Of a stretch of 64,000 nt of DNA, positions 19,644 to 64,000 are shown piece after piece. The stretch lies in sequence record NC_061444.1; one strand, 5' to 3'. The notes under the pieces were generated by a model that did no database searches, had not been told where the DNA came from, and saw only the letters and a program-made list of their open reading frames with translations. Both the position numbers and the translations under genes were made by a program. The stretch's first letter is position 1; the number at the start of each line of letters is the position of its first letter.

Positions 19644-19902
19644 CTCTATCCTCTAAAACAAATTGTAGTGTGCCCTGTATATTTACAGCATTCAGGCGCT
19701 TGCCGGACGCTGCAATCAGGCCATTCAGAATGCCAACGAAGTCAGCACTGTAACATTCAGGTGCAATCTGGTGAACGTAGATATCATCAGGTACATCGCC
19801 TGGGTTAAGCTGCCAAGCAGTACGCAAGGCAGCACCCATGAATGCCGGACGTTCTACCAGATGCTTGTTCAGGAACGAACATACATCTTCTGCCGTCATC
19901 AT
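19609..19902 (-). CDS. Hypothetical protein
   Basis: 97 aa, ATGA overlap with polymerase stop. Confidence 0.65.
   Translation of the reverse strand: MMTAEDVCSFLNKHLVERPAFMGAALRTAWQLNPGDVPDDIYVHQIAPECYSADFVGILNGLIAASGKRLNAVNIQGTLQFVLEDRDEDLSITEEPR
19680..19688 (-). promoter_or_regulatory. Putative phage promoter motif A (CTGTAAATA)
   Basis: Exact motif 37 nt upstream of clamp start. Confidence 0.5.
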
Positions 19903-22900
19903 TTCTTCGCAATCCCCTTAAGTGCCATTTTAAGCATGGATTTACTGATCTTGATTTTCTTCTGGCCCGTTGCGCCAGCAGCAGCGGCTTTCTTCTTCGC
20001 TTCCTCTGCTTCGTATGCTTCGAACTTCTTAACGTTCTTCGGAAGTTCTTTGAGCCATTCTTCGACGTTCTTCTTGTCTTTGTTGGTGAGAGGATTAACT
20101 TTATCCATGCTGCGAATCTTAATGCCATTCGCCCACAGTTGTTTCTTCATCCAATCAGACATGAGGTGATACTGATCTTCCATAATGGAGTCAGTTGTCT
20201 TCTCAACGTCTAGGTCAGGTTCGTTAAGCTCGTCGCGTTTAATCTCCAGACCTTTCTTGATAAGTTTACGCAGACCAACATAAGAGAAGTCCCAACCGCC
20301 AACGTCTTTTTCAGACGCACCAATTTCGAAGTCGATCTCAGGCACCGACGTGAACTCAAACCCTGGATGACGCTTCTGTACTTTCTCAACCACAGCGCTT
20401 GTCATAGCACGTTCGATCATATCAAGTGCAAGGAAGATCCACTTGTAATCACAGTCAACGGTTAAGGAGTCATGTACAGATACGTTCATATCAAAGTCAG
20501 GGTACTCGCCGTTCGCTTTCCAGTAATCGTACTTCATGCGGTCCAGAATACGAATCGCGGACATCATCAAGTCAGAACCGAAACCCTGTACTGGACTGTT
20601 TACTGCACGACGATCACACGCAGCATGTACCATGTTCGCTTCTTTGTGCGACTCAGGTAACATCAAGCCCCACAAATGACGACGACGACCAACAGGCGAT
20701 TCGACGAAGAAGTTCTCATGCGCAAACTTCTTAATCTTATCGAACCACTTCAAGCCTACAGGGAATCGTGTCAAGAACTTGTCTTTGATCTCTGCAATCT
20801 CTTTCACATCACGACCAGTAGACTTAGCAAGACCTTTATCACCCTGCTGATAAATCAGGCCGAAGATAACTGTCTTAACCGCGTTACGTACGGACTTGGT
20901 TACGTCCATTACGTTTGGAATACCGAAGAAGTATGCGGCGTTGATTTTGTGAACGTCACCTTCTGCTTCGACGCGGTGTCCTACCCACGGGTCTGGTACT
21001 GTACGATAACGATGACGCAACGTTCGACCCTGTTCGAATACGTCTGCTACGCCTTGGTCACCCGAGATGATTGACCAACCACGAACTTCGTGCGCTGAGT
21101 AGTCGACCTTGATTAACAGGCGATTCTTACGCGCAATCAGAATACGTTTGATCAGTTTACCCATCTCACTACGCGACGGTACCTGTTGCAAGTTCGGGTC
21201 AGATGCAGAAGTACGTCCCGTTACAACTCCGAGGTAGCCATACGTCGGTCTGATTGAACGGTCGTGTTTGAAGTCTTCTGATTCTCCCCAGAGCTTGAGC
21301 AAGCTGTTAACGTAGGCGTTCTTGAGCTTGTACGCTTTTCCGAGTTTGGTATATAACGCAACAAGAGGCACATCCTTATACGCCTCCTGGAAGTCCTTGT
21401 CGAGTTTGCCCGACTTCTTACCGTTCTCACGTAATTGCTCGCTCTCTTTCAGTGGCTTGAGTTTCATCACGTCAAAGAACAGAATCTGTTTGTGTTCTGC
21501 TTTCGACATATCGAACTTGGTCACTTCGACTTTGCCCATAAGACCCATCTTAGGAACATTGTCGTCTTTGCAAATAACCTTGTTCGCAGCCTTAACTTCA
21601 GGGCTGTTCATGAACTCGCGCTCTACGTTTCGAATCTCCTCGTTAATCGGAGAGTTCGGCAGGTTGAGCTTAAACAGGTAGTCGATATCAGCGCCAGCAC
21701 CTGTTGTCTCAAGTATCGAGAACGCATGAATCTGGTCTGAGATTTGCTCACTGACCATAGACTCATACTTACCGTACTTGATATCGTTCGCTCGAAGCAT
21801 CTGCTTCTCTGCGATGCGGAACGGTACGATAACGTCTAGGCCAGCATACTCCTGAACTGACTCGTCGAGGTCAACGTCTGCAATCGTTGCTCGCATCTCT
21901 TTACCGAACGATACTTCGTGATACACCTGACAGCCAAACTGCATTGTCAGGTTCGCTAAGTTGTAGTAACCGTTACCAGTTACCATCAACAGCGACTTGG
22001 CGTTTTCATCGAACGCGAACTCACCAGCCTGAATATCCCAGACGTTCGCAGCGTAACTACGAATGCCAAAGTTAGAGCGCATTACGTTCAGGTCGAACTT
22101 CGCGTTGGTGTAGATCTGATACTTGTTCTCGTTGTCCTCGAAGTAATCTTTGAACAACTCGCGTACCTTACGCAACTCCTTAGGACTGAATGGACTATCA
22201 CGATGATAGATTGGAATGACATACGCCTTCTGACCATCAGAGGATAACTGCACCGTCAAGATTTTATTCTTGATACGATTCAGGTTCTCTGTTTCGGTAT
22301 CGACTGCAACCTTCTTGGCGCGCTTCATACGCTTCAAGATTTTCTCAAGCTGCTTGACCTTCGTTACATACACGAGGTCCCAGTTACGCTTCTTACCACA
22401 CGTAACTTCGTCGATCTTATAGCGCATCCCTTTGTTCAACCACGGCAACATCCAACGTGCCATGTAACCGAGAGTATACGATGAACCGCTAATGTGCATC
22501 GGGTTCAATACGGTGTGATAGCTAACGTTCGGCAGATGAATGAAGCTGTGCTTCTTGCCGTCGTGCTTGAGCTTTGTAGGAATCTCAACACCGTACCAGT
22601 GCTCGTAGTGATCTTTCGAGAACTGAATCTTATCGTTGTTCAACGCTTTGAACGGCGCTTTACCAAACGTCAGTACGTAATCAGGCTTGTAGTCAACAAT
22701 CAGATCACGAATGCGATTAGCGAACGCTTGGTCTGCGTCCTCTTTGAACTGTTCACCCTTGTCATACGTCTTGAACATATTGTACGAGACAACAAGGAAG
22801 TTCCAGTCGTCGAGTGTGGTCTTTGTCGGGAACACGTCTTCGAGATACTGAATCTGGTTGAGGAACAATTCTCCTTCTGTGCTACTGAATATCTTACCGT

Positions 22901-23063
22901 TACGCAAGTCATCAGTCGGCATGTGATCGAGGACGAGTAGGGCTTTACCACCCTTGGCGCTTTTGCTTACGCCTTTTAGTATTCGAACACCGTCGTATGT
23001 CTGCTGTTCAGCAAACTGTTCAGGTGGATCGAAGTCAAGAGCTACGTGCTTGATTTTCACCAT
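19899..23063 (-). CDS. polA: Family A DNA polymerase with 3'-5' exonuclease and N-terminal UDG-like domain
   Basis: VAVDTETE (ExoI), NAKFD (ExoII), TGRTSASDPNLQQVP, DYSAHEVR (A), RNAVKTVIFGLIY (B), VHDSL (C). Confidence 0.93.
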   Translation of the reverse strand: MVKIKHVALDFDPPEQFAEQQTYDGVRILKGVSKSAKGGKALLVLDHMPTDDLRNGKIFSSTEGELFLNQIQYLEDVFPTKTTLDDWNFLVVSYNMFKTYDKGEQFKEDADQAFANRIRDLIVDYKPDYVLTFGKAPFKALNNDKIQFSKDHYEHWYGVEIPTKLKHDGKKHSFIHLPNVSYHTVLNPMHISGSSYTLGYMARWMLPWLNKGMRYKIDEVTCGKKRNWDLVYVTKVKQLEKILKRMKRAKKVAVDTETENLNRIKNKILTVQLSSDGQKAYVIPIYHRDSPFSPKELRKVRELFKDYFEDNENKYQIYTNAKFDLNVMRSNFGIRSYAANVWDIQAGEFAFDENAKSLLMVTGNGYYNLANLTMQFGCQVYHEVSFGKEMRATIADVDLDESVQEYAGLDVIVPFRIAEKQMLRANDIKYGKYESMVSEQISDQIHAFSILETTGAGADIDYLFKLNLPNSPINEEIRNVEREFMNSPEVKAANKVICKDDNVPKMGLMGKVEVTKFDMSKAEHKQILFFDVMKLKPLKESEQLRENGKKSGKLDKDFQEAYKDVPLVALYTKLGKAYKLKNAYVNSLLKLWGESEDFKHDRSIRPTYGYLGVVTGRTSASDPNLQQVPSRSEMGKLIKRILIARKNRLLIKVDYSAHEVRGWSIISGDQGVADVFEQGRTLRHRYRTVPDPWVGHRVEAEGDVHKINAAYFFGIPNVMDVTKSVRNAVKTVIFGLIYQQGDKGLAKSTGRDVKEIAEIKDKFLTRFPVGLKWFDKIKKFAHENFFVESPVGRRRHLWGLMLPESHKEANMVHAACDRRAVNSPVQGFGSDLMMSAIRILDRMKYDYWKANGEYPDFDMNVSVHDSLTVDCDYKWIFLALDMIERAMTSAVVEKVQKRHPGFEFTSVPEIDFEIGASEKDVGGWDFSYVGLRKLIKKGLEIKRDELNEPDLDVEKTTDSIMEDQYHLMSDWMKKQLWANGIKIRSMDKVNPLTNKDKKNVEEWLKELPKNVKKFEAYEAEEAKKKAAAAGATGQKKIKISKSMLKMALKGIAKK

Positions 23064-56478: not shown

Positions 56479-56487
56479 TATTTACAG
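56479..56487 (-). promoter_or_regulatory. Putative phage promoter motif A (CTGTAAATA)
   Basis: Exact motif 38 nt upstream of clamp loader start. Confidence 0.55.
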
Positions 56488-60472: not shown

Positions 60473-61006
60473 TCAATCAGGTCTGTTCATCTGTCGATCG
60501 ATATACTCGGCCATTTCGTCTTCGTCATCTTCATCCATGTTTGCCTTTAAGTCTTTCTGCTCCAACGCAGATAACTCTCGGACATACTTCTGGCGAGCAC
60601 GAAGCGCAACAATGTTTTCTTTAGGTAGTTGGTAGATCAACCACGTATACGAATACATCAGAGGGAAACTTTTCAAACGCTTTTCAGGCTTGAGCATTTG
60701 ACGCATAATGCGCTGCGAATAATCATCAAACTTGGCTTGCATTCCTTTTGTCGAATCAAGCCAACGATCAAGAAACGCAAAGCCATTTTTATCTACAAGA
60801 CTTTGCGCATCACACGCAGCAGAAAGCATAAGACGGCTATCCTTTGTCTTGTTGTATTTCTTTTCCAACTCAGGAAACGTTCCATGTTTCTGTTCGATAT
60901 ACAACTCGATTATGATCGCATACCGAATGCGTTGGTTCTCATTAACCTCTGGATAGATCTTTACCACTACGTCCTCTACACTGGTTTGAGTTTCAGATGG
61001 GTCCAA
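60473..61006 (-). CDS. Hypothetical protein
   Basis: 177 aa, helical with acidic tail. Confidence 0.65.
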   Translation of the reverse strand: MDPSETQTSVEDVVVKIYPEVNENQRIRYAIIIELYIEQKHGTFPELEKKYNKTKDSRLMLSAACDAQSLVDKNGFAFLDRWLDSTKGMQAKFDDYSQRIMRQMLKPEKRLKSFPLMYSYTWLIYQLPKENIVALRARQKYVRELSALEQKDLKANMDEDDEDEMAEYIDRQMNRPD

Positions 61007-61479
61007 GGAAAATCACAATCTTCCATAGAGTCGTTCGCTTCTGCAAATTCAGCAAAGTCTGCTATGTCTTCGTCGTGACCGAACATAGCTGTGAACTCTT
61101 GACCTTCTAATTCCGCCTGCCAGTCTTCGTCATCTTCGATAACACGTTTCCAGATTGCGTCATGAAGCTCTGTGAACTTCTGGGCTTTCTTAGGGAAACG
61201 CACGTTCAAATAATCACGAGCGTAGCAGATCGTATAGTCTCCAGAATCAACAAGACGCTTGATTGAGGAGTACGGCTTTTTAGGGTCGAAGCCTGCAACA
61301 CACTTCAAGTAACTCTGATGAAGTTCAGGAGAGGCACTCTCCATGTCAGTCAGGCTCGCAGTTTCGATCAGGCGATTGACAACTTTTTTATTAGCCAGAA
61401 TTGGCCATTGGCTCGGCGGCAGTTCAACACTTTCGGACAGAACAAACTCCAACCGAAATAGAACTTCAAGCAAACTCAT
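60976..61479 (-). CDS. Hypothetical protein
   Basis: 167 aa, ATGA overlap with upstream gene. Confidence 0.65.
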   Translation of the reverse strand: MSLLEVLFRLEFVLSESVELPPSQWPILANKKVVNRLIETASLTDMESASPELHQSYLKCVAGFDPKKPYSSIKRLVDSGDYTICYARDYLNVRFPKKAQKFTELHDAIWKRVIEDDEDWQAELEGQEFTAMFGHDEDIADFAEFAEANDSMEDCDFPWTHLKLKPV

Positions 61480-63053
61480 TCGCTGTCCTCAGTAAAATCA
61501 ATCGTGTCAGAAAACTTCTTACGAACAAACTTAGCGTAGTCGCTTGATAGATTGCGCAGCGGTTGGAGCAGCGCACCATCGTGTTCGAAAGAATACACGG
61601 AACGTACCTGAGATGAATCCCTGACGACTTCAAACAAATACGAACTCTCTAATCCTGTAATGATATGGTTGAGCATCGTTCGTTTGTCTTTCGATGACGG
61701 TCCTTTCAACGGCCACGAGAACTTTGTGCCTGTAGCACACGTCAGGTACATTCTATTTCCTGAACGTCGTGCTCGCTTCTCATAAAGCTGCTGTAAGATA
61801 ACCAATCCCTCAACAAGACCTTCGGTCAACTTGTCCCACTTGTCAAGCATAGCATGTGTCGCCGCACGATCACCTTTATGCGATTCAAGTAATGACGCGT
61901 ATATCTGACCTTTATCCGAACGTCGAATCTTACCGAGAGTATACACAGTACCATAGAAACATTTCTTGGTAGTTGCGACGCTCTCACCAATCATCTCTGC
62001 TAGTTCATTTACAGAATTAAGGCTTTCAACAAGAGCGCAAGGGATGTTGTACGCAGCGAACTCCCTCTTAATGATGTTGAGCTGGCTGGACTTCATGTCC
62101 CAGTTTACACCAACAACATAGCACGCCTGTTTCAACTTGCTCGGCATGTTTTGAAAACCACCGCCAATCTCAAACAGTCGCCCGCCTTTAGTCGCAACTT
62201 TATAGGCCGGCCAGTATCTGATTGTCAGAGGATCTTCGTCAACAATCTCAATCGGCCCAGACAGAATAGAATCCAGCAGATACATCGCCTGTTGAAATTT
62301 CTTCTGGTCTTTCTTGTTGTTACGCAAGGACATTTGCTCAAGGAAAGCAAGTATCGGTTCGATTAAGATTTCATTCGGTGCTAAAACATCTAACACCTGT
62401 TTGTAATAGCGTTTGACCTCACGGCCCGAGTTTTTGTCGATGGGACTCAGGTCATGTTTACGCATCGTGAATTTCTTCTTCGCTGCCGCGTGGATGCGCT
62501 CGATTATCGTATGCCCGAAACGAGACTGAGGTGCTTTCAGTGGACTATATAGCCGCACAGTATTGAGCAAATCATATCGCGTTCTCGGTACGACAGGGTA
62601 CATCTGCTCAAGGTGGAATCGCTTAACACGATACTCCCGACATTTCCCAGGCTGACCATTCTTGCCCAGCTTCTTACGCTTAACGTCAAATACGTTTTCG
62701 ATTAACCAGTCAAGGGCCCTATTGAACTGATTAGAACCTCTTTTCTGTTTCGACGCAGCAACAGCACCTGTTTTCAGTCGATAATCCCCGAAAACTAGCG
62801 GCAGAACAGATCGCCCGTACGAATAACTGAATGGACAGAACGTTTCCCCGAACAGCTCGCCCCTGTTACGCTTAGAGCGATAGATAGACACGTTAAGCAC
62901 ATGCCAGAAGAACAGGTTGATTTGCTCCCTGAACTCCTTTTCGTTCTCTGCCGGGCCTTCGTACGGACAGGCAAAGACTATGTTATCTCGTACCCATTGA
63001 ATTGCTTGAAGCTCTTGGTACGAGGGATTTTTAATTAGAAATGGCTGACTCAT
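61476..63053 (-). CDS. Divergent family A/T7-RNAP-superfamily polymerase-like protein (TV-Pol-like)
   Basis: GGRLF...FQNMP, WDMKSSQL (A), TKKCFYGTVY (B), EHDGALL (C) in the expected order; no exonuclease domain. Confidence 0.6.
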   Translation of the reverse strand: MSQPFLIKNPSYQELQAIQWVRDNIVFACPYEGPAENEKEFREQINLFFWHVLNVSIYRSKRNRGELFGETFCPFSYSYGRSVLPLVFGDYRLKTGAVAASKQKRGSNQFNRALDWLIENVFDVKRKKLGKNGQPGKCREYRVKRFHLEQMYPVVPRTRYDLLNTVRLYSPLKAPQSRFGHTIIERIHAAAKKKFTMRKHDLSPIDKNSGREVKRYYKQVLDVLAPNEILIEPILAFLEQMSLRNNKKDQKKFQQAMYLLDSILSGPIEIVDEDPLTIRYWPAYKVATKGGRLFEIGGGFQNMPSKLKQACYVVGVNWDMKSSQLNIIKREFAAYNIPCALVESLNSVNELAEMIGESVATTKKCFYGTVYTLGKIRRSDKGQIYASLLESHKGDRAATHAMLDKWDKLTEGLVEGLVILQQLYEKRARRSGNRMYLTCATGTKFSWPLKGPSSKDKRTMLNHIITGLESSYLFEVVRDSSQVRSVYSFEHDGALLQPLRNLSSDYAKFVRKKFSDTIDFTEDSE

Positions 63054-63100
63054 TGCCTTTTCATACCCATATCTCGATCCTTGCTTCTTTTTCTATAGGT

Positions 63101-63109
63101 TCTTTACAG
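63101..63109 (-). promoter_or_regulatory. Motif A variant (CTGTAAAGA)
   Basis: One mismatch; 48 nt upstream of start 63053. Confidence 0.35.
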
Positions 63110-63440
63110 AATCAACTTATCAACCCTTACAAACCTTGTACCGTCAACTATCCTCGCTTGGCTCGCTCTGGATGGCGAGGTCAGGACGGCTAGGTACGGC
63201 TTGGAACTGATCGATAACATACAGGGCTATAGTACACTGCGGTAAAAAAGACCTGACCTGCGAAAAACGCTATGATCTGCGTGTCTACAGTGGTCAAAAT
63301 AGCCCTATATTGAAAAAATAGCCGCAAAAAGATCTCGCCGATTCCGTGTAATTTGGGCGTGTTTTTTGAACCCCCACCCACGGAGCGCTTAAAACGCAAA
63401 TCTACCCAAAATCGGTTAATCTTTATCCAGATATTTTGAG

Positions 63441-64000
63441 TCATTTTTTCTGCGAAACGCGCTTCCCTAACTTCACTCCAATCTGCGTCAGGATGCGCTT
63501 AACGGTCTCTCCGTCGTGCTCCGCCATAGCGTTTGCGAGCCTTTCGCCCTGTTCGCGCGATAGCTCAGGCATAATCATTTTGAGCATCTGCGAGCGCATT
63601 TTAGCAGACTTTGAGCGCCCTTTCGATATTGAAACACCAGCCTCGTCGAGTTCCTCTGCTACGCGACTCATGGTGCGCTGCACACGACGATCAGCGAAGA
63701 TATCAGCGAATAAACTGCCGAACAACTGCTTAAAGTTGCCCTGTGCGTTAGGGAAACCTCCCGTTTGTGTGCAGTGCGTAGATTCAACCTGATTCGTTGT
63801 GCGTCCACCAGCACGGAAGTTCTCGTCAGGGCGCGACGCTTTACCCTCTGCACCCGGCTTAGTGTTGCCGTTACGCAGATCAGCATCGCCTTCGACAGCT
63901 TTATCCGGGTCAAACATGTCGTCAGCTTTCGCGCTTTGATTAGCGTCGAACGGAATCTTACCTGTCAGCTTATTCGGGTCTGGCCAACTGTCAGGGATAT
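63441..64000 (-). CDS. Hypothetical protein, 5'-truncated by window edge
   Basis: Frame of the 63441..63917 ORF stays open to 64000 (..IPDSWPDPNKLTGKIPFDANQSAKADDMFDP..). Confidence 0.65.
   Translation of the reverse strand, partial: IPDSWPDPNKLTGKIPFDANQSAKADDMFDPDKAVEGDADLRNGNTKPGAEGKASRPDENFRAGGRTTNQVESTHCTQTGGFPNAQGNFKQLFGSLFADIFADRRVQRTMSRVAEELDEAGVSISKGRSKSAKMRSQMLKMIMPELSREQGERLANAMAEHDGETVKRILTQIGVKLGKRVSQKK

Follow-up and report, generated by a model that had tools for sequence, protein, structure and literature searches.

A TV-Pol family polymerase in an exchangeable cassette of the Erwinia jumbo phage pEa_SNUABM_32

Why does a phage that encodes a complete family-A DNA polymerase carry a second, much smaller polymerase-like gene, and what might that gene do? 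The question is raised by gp223 (pEaSNUABM32_00223 / MPK67_gp223) of Erwinia phage pEa_SNUABM_32 (genus Alexandravirus, MZ443774 / NC_061444, 265,891 bp), whose product is annotated in the record as a "hypothetical protein". The DNA analysed here, called the window, is a 64,000-nt stretch of this genome, with window position equal to record position minus 124,000; coordinates are those of the window unless stated otherwise, and gp223 occupies 61476-63053 on the minus strand. A first-pass annotation, made from the letters alone, had described it as a minimal relative of PolA and of the TV-Pol proteins, and had suggested a role in priming or replication initiation. We find that gp223 is an unannotated member of the known TV-Pol family; what is new is the mosaic cassette in which it lies and a unique motif upstream of it.

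The 525-amino-acid (aa) open reading frame (ORF) proved genuine, a minus-strand frame that is also annotated in the record, and the four strings on which the polymerase assignment had rested are all present in its product: TKGGRLFEIGGGFQNMP at residues 288-304, WDMKSSQL at 318-325, TKKCFYGTVY at 362-371 and EHDG at 490-493. The comparison gene at 19899-23063 (minus strand) is, as had been stated, a full PolA, a canonical replicative enzyme of 1054 aa that matches the Pfam models DNA_pol_A (E 1.2e-53) and DNA_pol_A_exo1 for the 3'-5' exonuclease (E 5.6e-16). Searches of Pfam and NCBIfam returned no model for gp223 or for 35 diverse relatives. Direct comparison with Pfam PF00476 (DNA_pol_A) gave no match to gp223 at E up to 10 and none to the 35 relatives at E up to 0.01, and sequence searches against PDB chains with gp223 alone and with two profiles found nothing. 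PHROGs places the protein in phrog_30690, a group of unknown function.

An AlphaFold2 (AF2) model of gp223, built on 24 orthologues, had a mean predicted local distance difference test score (pLDDT) of 87 and a predicted template modelling score (pTM) of 0.76. Foldseek comparison with the PDB retrieved Klenow, Taq, Bst, Pol theta, apPol and T7 gp5, every top match listed being a family-A DNA polymerase (E ~1e-5 to 6e-4, probability 0.99-1.00). VIA, a search independent of Foldseek, aligned model residues 195-514 to Klenow with a Z of 15.7 (284 residues, root-mean-square deviation 4.2), followed by Pol theta (14.6), Pol nu (13.9), apPol (13.4) and T7 DNA polymerase (DNAP; 12.7). RNA polymerases (RNAPs) scored 11.1 (yeast mitochondrial), 10.5 (T7), 6.9 (N4 mini-vRNAP) and 6.5 (N4 RNAPII), and unrelated folds began at Z ~5. 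The expected thumb, palm and fingers fold was thus recovered by AF2, Foldseek and VIA, with the palm superposing on that of Klenow; this core spans residues ~195-517 (61503-62471, minus strand). Within the thumb-aligned stretch, which starts at 195-204, the predicted model contains helices 231-243 and 247-264, together with 211-221. The absence of an exonuclease domain also held, there being no Pfam match and no structural match beyond thumb, palm and fingers; the N-terminal 190 residues gave no structural match to exonucleases.

The N-terminal part had been described as a basic region of ~250 aa. Its basic character was borne out (residues 1-270 have an isoelectric point of 9.8, with 46 K+R against 27 D+E), but its length was not: because the thumb begins near residue 195-205, the accessory domain comprises ~190 residues rather than 250. 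This alpha+beta domain, residues 1 to ~190, corresponds to 62484-63053 on the minus strand and aligns with the N-terminal part of Ma-LMM01 gp030, described below. VIA matches to residues 10-155 were weak (Z 4.3-5.1) and all of winged-helix type (S19e, TFE-alpha / TFIIE-alpha, ADAR1 Z-beta and an archaeal regulator), so that a winged-helix nature of the modelled domain is plausible; it probably binds DNA.

Conservation was assessed in 165 diverse relatives of at least 380 aa, aligned to the family model. R292, D319, K363 and D492 are invariant in the 24 orthologues, and among the relatives R292 and K363 reach 100%, D319 and E469 99%, D492, G493, G467, Q301 and N317 98%, K308 96%, Q324 95% and H491 92%. 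Since the key residues are invariant in orthologues and 98-100% conserved in relatives, the quoted strings are not chance matches. R292 (codon 62178-62180), the arginine of the GGR hairpin, lies between model strands 284-286 and 293-295 and forms an Arg hairpin before the palm. The motif A aspartate D319 (62097-62099) ends strand 316-320, and the turn that joins strands 483-489 and 493-498 holds the motif C aspartate D492 of EHDG (61578-61580), both being at the canonical positions that had been assigned to them; the motif B lysine is K363 (61965-61967), all four codons being on the minus strand.

Profile comparison of the gp223 family with a three-sequence PolA profile gave a weak match (hhalign, E 5e-4). 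Comparisons with single Pol I, T7 DNAP and T7 RNAP sequences had probabilities too low to serve as evidence and were used for residue registers only. In the alignments to Pol I and to the PolA profile, GGR292 corresponds to TGR668 of Pol I (Klenow R668), FQNMP to LQNIP, K308 to R682, K363/Y367/Y371 to K758/F762/Y766, R458...G467 to R841...G850, and H491-D492-G493 to H881-D882-E883, with TG of gp223 taking the place of QG and HD shared by both proteins. E469 is a family-specific invariant acid, extra with respect to Pol I. Judged from its residues gp223 looks catalytically intact, and we regard it as likely, by prediction, that it is an active polymerase.

The best structural matches, Z 12.7-15.7, are thus to Klenow, T7 gp5 and Pol theta, but gp223 differs from such family-A DNA polymerases in having no exonuclease, no steric-gate Glu and a core of ~320 residues, compared with ~400 in Klenow. 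With the T7-type RNAPs, including N4 RNAPII and N4 mini-vRNAP, it shares the superfamily fold (Z 6.5-11.1), an accessory domain before the thumb and a motif C acid pair cut to a single Asp. Unlike them it is much smaller and scores below the DNA polymerases, and the tyrosine equivalent to T7 RNAP Y639 is not conserved: position 371, K+8 of motif B, is Tyr in gp223, and in the family Met (50%), Phe (39%) or Tyr (4%).

The TV-Pols of transposons and viruses were defined as minimal polymerases resembling the A family and predicted to be primase-polymerases, and Microcystis phage Ma-LMM01 was named as a carrier, with the gene inside an integrated element (Iyer, Abhiman & Aravind 2008, PMC2579912). 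A profile of the 35 diverse relatives searched against Ma-LMM01 matched one 515-aa open frame, gp030, with an E of 3.6e-21, and the hhalign alignment of the gp223 family with gp030 spans 415 columns, N-terminal domain included (probability 99.55%, E 2e-23). The one other A-family gene in Ma-LMM01 is an ordinary PolA; gp030 was taken as the TV-Pol of the paper because it is the only non-canonical A-family-like gene in that phage. It adjoins two transposase (insertion sequence, IS) genes, in agreement with the paper. By this profile match, which upholds the relationship suggested in the first-pass annotation, gp223 is a TV-Pol and falls in the subset that possesses an N-terminal globular domain.

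Other properties of gp223 agree with those described for the family, namely a length in the 400-600 aa class, a two-helix thumb, an Arg hairpin, an RRM-like palm with two Asp, the invariant fingers Lys and no nuclease; of the family's features, the Arg of the fingers RxxxK is missing. Further differences from typical TV-Pols are an N-terminal domain modelled as alpha+beta rather than all-helical, and a phage equipped with a full PolA/DnaB/DnaG replisome and carrying no D5-like helicase, integrase or transposase next to the polymerase gene. Among the BFVD matches that Foldseek gave for gp223 were the "DNA replication protein" of the Zamilon virophage and, from the algal Pyramimonas orientalis virus, a protein with an origin-binding domain. 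We consider the fold and the family assignment secure, with very little room for doubt. A full-text literature search found no paper pairing TV-Pol with "jumbo phage", Alexandravirus or vB_EamM_Y3.

Full-length orthologues of gp223 were found by tblastn in 49 records of Erwinia, Dickeya and Yersinia jumbo phages; among the matches listed, the phage's own two records aside, 38 others have 21-46% identity to gp223. They represent one fixed locus of the matching jumbo phages (genomes ~250-267 kb): the gp223 locus is syntenic in all 49 records with a match, and 9/9 orthologous loci examined share its slot and orientation, the phages concerned belonging to three named phage genera or, in the case of one Yersinia phage, being unclassified. 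Beyond these phages, a gp223 profile searched against 1.8 billion representative proteins matched 711 clusters at E up to 1e-3, 402 of them at E up to 1e-10, mostly 400-650 aa in length. With at least 711 clusters (clustering at 50% identity) and blank libraries, the family is therefore large and unnamed. In Dickeya phage AD1 (MH460463) the annotated start cuts the TV-Pol orthologue AD1_214 to 350 aa (L046:1492-3081), and the tblastn match starts ~530 nt further upstream. BFVD holds entries of 405 aa and 284 aa from phages JA11 and JA13; since the tblastn matches in these phages cover ~98% of the 525 aa, such annotations may divide the gene or cut it short.

We next consider what surrounds the gene. 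Comparison of pEa_SNUABM_32 with pEa_SNUABM_17 by blastn showed flanks of 91.9% and 97.8% nucleotide identity, up to 63445 and from 60533, enclosing a 2.9-kb cassette (60534-63444, minus strand) that contains the leader, the polymerase gene, gp222 and most of gp221, and in which nothing aligns but 215 nt at 69%. At the protein level the flanking genes are 92-100% identical between the two phages, the polymerase is 45.5% identical, and the small downstream ORFs are unrelated. The closest polymerase to that of pEa_SNUABM_32 (58%) belongs to a metagenomic phage with the most distant flanking proteins (59% and 34%), and across phages polymerase identities are discordant with those of the flanking genes. 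The polymerase, its upstream DNA and its partner genes are exchanged as a cassette between phages.

Downstream in the cassette lie two small genes, both on the minus strand. gp222 (60976-61479, 167 aa), a candidate partner, is joined to the polymerase stop by an ATGA overlap and encodes a protein with an acidic disordered tail. It is a genuine conserved protein: gp222-like proteins of 164-168 aa occur solely with the 524/525-aa polymerase clade, their genes overlapping or abutting the polymerase stop. Its AF2 model is all-helical (pLDDT 73) and found no match in a fold search (best Z 3.8). An oligonucleotide/oligosaccharide-binding (OB)-fold protein that binds single-stranded DNA (SSB), on the pattern of the CCPol-MP pair discussed below, was considered for gp222 and rejected on the all-alpha model and the lack of a structural match. 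The second gene, gp221 (60473-60967, 164 aa), also encodes an acidic-tailed protein, with tblastn relatives just downstream of the polymerase gene in 16 other records (AD1, Y3 and fHe-Yen9-02-type phages). The small downstream genes are thus of at least two sequence types, both of which are carried by pEa_SNUABM_32; for neither gp222 nor gp221 did the ESM Atlas offer a clue.

Upstream of the polymerase, 63054-63440 had been called non-coding. The record does annotate an 84-aa gene there, gp224 (63190-63444, minus strand), against that claim; in its favour, gp224 is without homologue and unannotated in most relatives, and tblastn found no match to it in any other phage record, so that, from its sequence, it is probably not a gene. 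With the doubtful gp224 included, the upstream region extends over 63054-63444 (minus strand), and a corresponding gap of 390-500 nt without a conserved gene precedes the polymerase in 9/9 orthologous loci examined. Although these regions are otherwise unalignable, an A-rich stretch with TTACAYGG is kept in 7/9 of them, 277-397 nt before the ATG. In pEa_SNUABM_32 it appears as TTACACGG (63344-63351, minus strand) within the full motif AWWTTACAYGG (63344-63354), of which there is exactly one copy in the 265,891-bp genome.

A second, promoter-like motif, TCTGTAAAGAAC, lies 57 nt before the gp223 ATG (63099-63110, minus strand) and is kept in the orthologous loci. Its core, CTGTAAANA, occurs in 41 genome copies where 9 are expected, with the motif form (A/T)CTGTAAATA; the orientation of the copies listed matches that of the local genes, and many lie within ~70 nt upstream of an ATG. 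The motif is found also ahead of the PolA, DnaG and clamp-loader genes, further minus-strand examples being at 56487 (record 180487) and 23110 (record 147110). The sigma-like factor of the phage may use it as a -10-only site. Predicted sigma-70 promoters and terminators around gp223 were discarded, as their counts did not exceed those obtained from shuffled sequence. A search for expression data turned up no RNA run from an infected culture among the runs retrieved. In pEa_SNUABM_17 and Alexandra, a terminator-like GGAGGAAA...TTTTCCTC hairpin with a T-run follows the gene upstream of the cassette (L010:5590-5640, L011:5510-5560); in pEa_SNUABM_32 this site is instead the start of the ORFan gp224.

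A repeat search of the pEa_SNUABM_32 upstream region gave short two-copy matches only; the motif TATAGCCCT was noted alongside it. A structured RNA was also considered and was not established: the folding z-scores of single sequences were -3.1 (the pEa_SNUABM_32 upstream region) and -2.0, RNAalifold on the upstream regions of 7 loci found no shared pairs, and scanning of the relatives' loci at the Rfam gathering score yielded nothing but a tRNA, on a different contig. The TV-Pol homologue of three unrelated phage contigs follows a divergent junction whose 740-880 nt of non-coding DNA bear direct repeats of origin-like look, comprising a 55-nt repeat in two copies (89% identity), a tandem pair of 28 nt and AT-rich 30-mers (L028:7698-7831; L004:7715-7770; L026:7394-7574).

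The gene forms part of an extended minus-strand block; the clamp loader gp213 and an annotated Holliday-junction resolvase, gp227, are no more than a few kb away. gp233, annotated as hypothetical, is a DnaG-type primase, with a CHC2 zinc ribbon (E 1.3e-8) and Toprim_2 (E 3e-6); it lies beyond the window, ~6.6 kb from gp223 (record 193,668-194,726; L002:33669-34727). A match to the PD-(D/E)XK nuclease family was obtained for gp235, which carries the label 'CRISPR/Cas system associated'. The search for a nuclease among the proteins of the genes neighbouring gp223 gave no match, and no D5-like helicase, integrase, resolvase or transposase adjoins gp223 in the phage. Cumulative GC skew over the whole genome has its maximum at 63 kb and a minimum plateau at record 189-195 kb, which coincides with the gene-orientation switch (189.2 kb) and the DnaG primase gene. 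The cassette, at record 184.5-187.4 kb, is 2-8 kb from this minimum, a position that fits an origin near the cassette.

Homologues are found in bacterial chromosomes as well. In several Klebsiella species and in Gilliamella, a gene for a 490-499-aa homologue lies in integrase-bearing islands, 270-300 nt after alpA (Klebsiella grimontii, L013:7558-17245; Gilliamella, L014:11604-17915). The post-alpA position is the usual place of the primase or replicase in P4-like and phage-inducible chromosomal island (PICI)-like elements. The genes that follow the homologue encode a type I restriction-modification (R-M) system (HsdM/HsdS) and an AAA_15 ATPase, or a 2103-aa protein without a Pfam domain, and in the Klebsiella island a GmrSD gene is located just upstream. 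A copy in a Desulfobacula metagenome-assembled genome (MAG) has an integrase gene nearby; a pattern-based scan of prokaryote genomes found this MAG only, its search patterns being narrow and its result no evidence of absence elsewhere.

CCPol is the only TV-Pol with a measured activity. Together with its partner MP, CCPol of SCCmec is a dNTP-dependent primase-polymerase that primes when MP is present, and by itself it extends primers efficiently (Bebel et al. 2020, PMC7581432); similar Pol-SSB pairs occur in Bacillota elements (Rice 2023, PMC10061031). What gp223 has in common with these pairs is a compact polymerase of the A family, two catalytic Asp and a small, closely linked gene just downstream. 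It differs from the CCPol-MP type in having no adjoining helicase gene, and, as compared with the published description, CCPol keeps the equivalents of Klenow E710 and F762 where gp223 has Q324/N326 and Y367.

The reading that we tentatively favour, on circumstantial evidence and with less than even confidence, is that gp223 is a specialised replication-initiation primase-polymerase working with its own cassette DNA. Its N-terminal domain would place the enzyme on a specific site, most likely in the non-coding DNA that is exchanged along with the gene as part of the cassette. On unwound template, the palm (D319, D492) would next initiate or lengthen a short chain of nucleic acid, possibly helped by the small acidic-tailed downstream proteins, and the product would pass to the PolA / DnaB / DnaG / clamp-loader replisome of the phage. 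The role would be initiation and not general lagging-strand priming, and the substrate, by analogy with CCPol, is probably dNTPs. The fold, the family, the conserved catalytic residues, the exchange of the cassette and the genomic contexts are shown by the analysis, and de novo priming, binding of the upstream region and any partner interaction are inferred. The co-variation of the cassette, its GC-skew position and the contexts in bacterial islands fit initiation, as do the CCPol precedent, the promoter-like motif common with replication genes and the ever-present upstream region with its motif.

Several observations weigh against this proposal. The phage has its own DnaG-type primase (gp233) and DnaB helicase, and with these and PolA present the TV-Pol fills no obvious gap. 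The pEa_SNUABM_32 upstream region contains no clear iterons or AT-rich unwinding element, and the GC skew is confounded by the switch in transcription direction at 189.2 kb. The putative partner gp222 is all-alpha with an acidic tail, whereas MP, the partner of CCPol, is an OB-fold SSB. In the fingers, the position of the RxxxK arginine is V359 (in the family V 40%, K 23%, R 10%), for which K308, in register with Klenow R682, may supply a substitute charge. Motif C is HDG, without the Glu of HDE, and the position of the Klenow steric gate E710 is not Glu, the candidates being Q324 (95% conserved) or N326 (variable), depending on an indel of 1-2 residues; given such a motif C and a non-Glu gate, the choice of substrate and sugar is not readable from the sequence. 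Finally, exchange of the cassette fits a function in an arms race too.

That last point leads to the strongest competitor, a conflict-related polymerase, which we judge unlikely. Here the enzyme would make a nucleic-acid product that counters the defences of the host, satellites or rival phages, or it would itself be targeted, and the diversity of the locus would reflect an arms race. Alleles only 45% identical, with differing partner genes, between flanks 92-98% identical are what such a process could leave, and the bacterial homologues adjoin type I R-M, GmrSD and AAA_15 genes. However, the island gene is placed between alpA and the defence genes, not within a defence operon; the locus is syntenic in all 49 matching phage records; and the promoter-like motif is common with replication genes. 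We know of no defence or anti-defence system based on a family-A polymerase.

Somewhat less probable again is an auxiliary DNA polymerase without priming activity, devoted to gap filling, translesion or recombination-dependent synthesis on substrates that are poor for the proof-reading PolA. A family-A fold without an exonuclease would suit this role, as would the motif B Tyr at K+4, found also in T7 DNAP, the location within a few kb of Holliday-junction resolvase, clamp-loader and PD-(D/E)XK nuclease genes, and the ability of CCPol alone to extend primers well (PMC7581432). Such a function leaves unexplained the N-terminal domain common with mobile-element TV-Pols, the exchange of the cassette together with its own non-coding DNA, and the post-alpA position in islands.

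We think it improbable that gp223 is a passenger from a selfish TV-Pol element, a domesticated or hitch-hiking mobile remnant of little benefit to the phage. Transposons and integrative elements are where TV-Pols typically occur (PMC2579912), the copy in Ma-LMM01 adjoins IS transposases, and the identities of the polymerase and the flanking genes are discordant; yet the surroundings of the phage gene showed neither an integrase or transposase nor terminal repeats, its slot and orientation are constant in 9/9 orthologous loci, and its catalytic residues are strictly conserved. Least probable of all is a minimal single-subunit RNAP of the T7 / N4 RNAPII type that transcribes a few phage genes or makes an RNA primer: the mitochondrial RNAP aligns over 379 residues including the N-terminus (Z 11.1; T7 RNAP 10.5), motif C is HDG without Glu, like HDS of T7 RNAP, and the D-x3-S spacing of motif A is akin to that of T7 RNAP, but DNA polymerases score higher (Z 12.5-15.7), the Y639 equivalent is Met or Phe in 89% of relatives, a cassette swap would demand matching promoter changes genome-wide, and the abundant promoter-like motif resembles a -10-only site for a phage sigma factor acting with host RNAP.

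A name can now be put to a protein that 49 phage records carry and that is listed as hypothetical in those examined. TV-Pols were predicted to be primase-polymerases in 2008, and only CCPol has been assayed since; as the hosts of most of these phages are plant pathogens amenable to laboratory culture, the TV-Pol idea is directly testable, with near-identical phages already providing natural swaps of alleles. Initiation by gp223 can be taken one step further, to a possibility that we hold to be doubtful: the polymerase, the AWWTTACAYGG upstream element and the acidic-tailed partners may form a self-contained, exchangeable origin-plus-initiator module of jumbo phages, with an A-family primase-polymerase as its starter in place of a DnaA/O-type initiator or a transcript made by RNA polymerase, and the same type of module may drive the replication of integrative islands in Enterobacteria. 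If true, this would explain both how replication starts in these jumbo phages and why the locus is mosaic.

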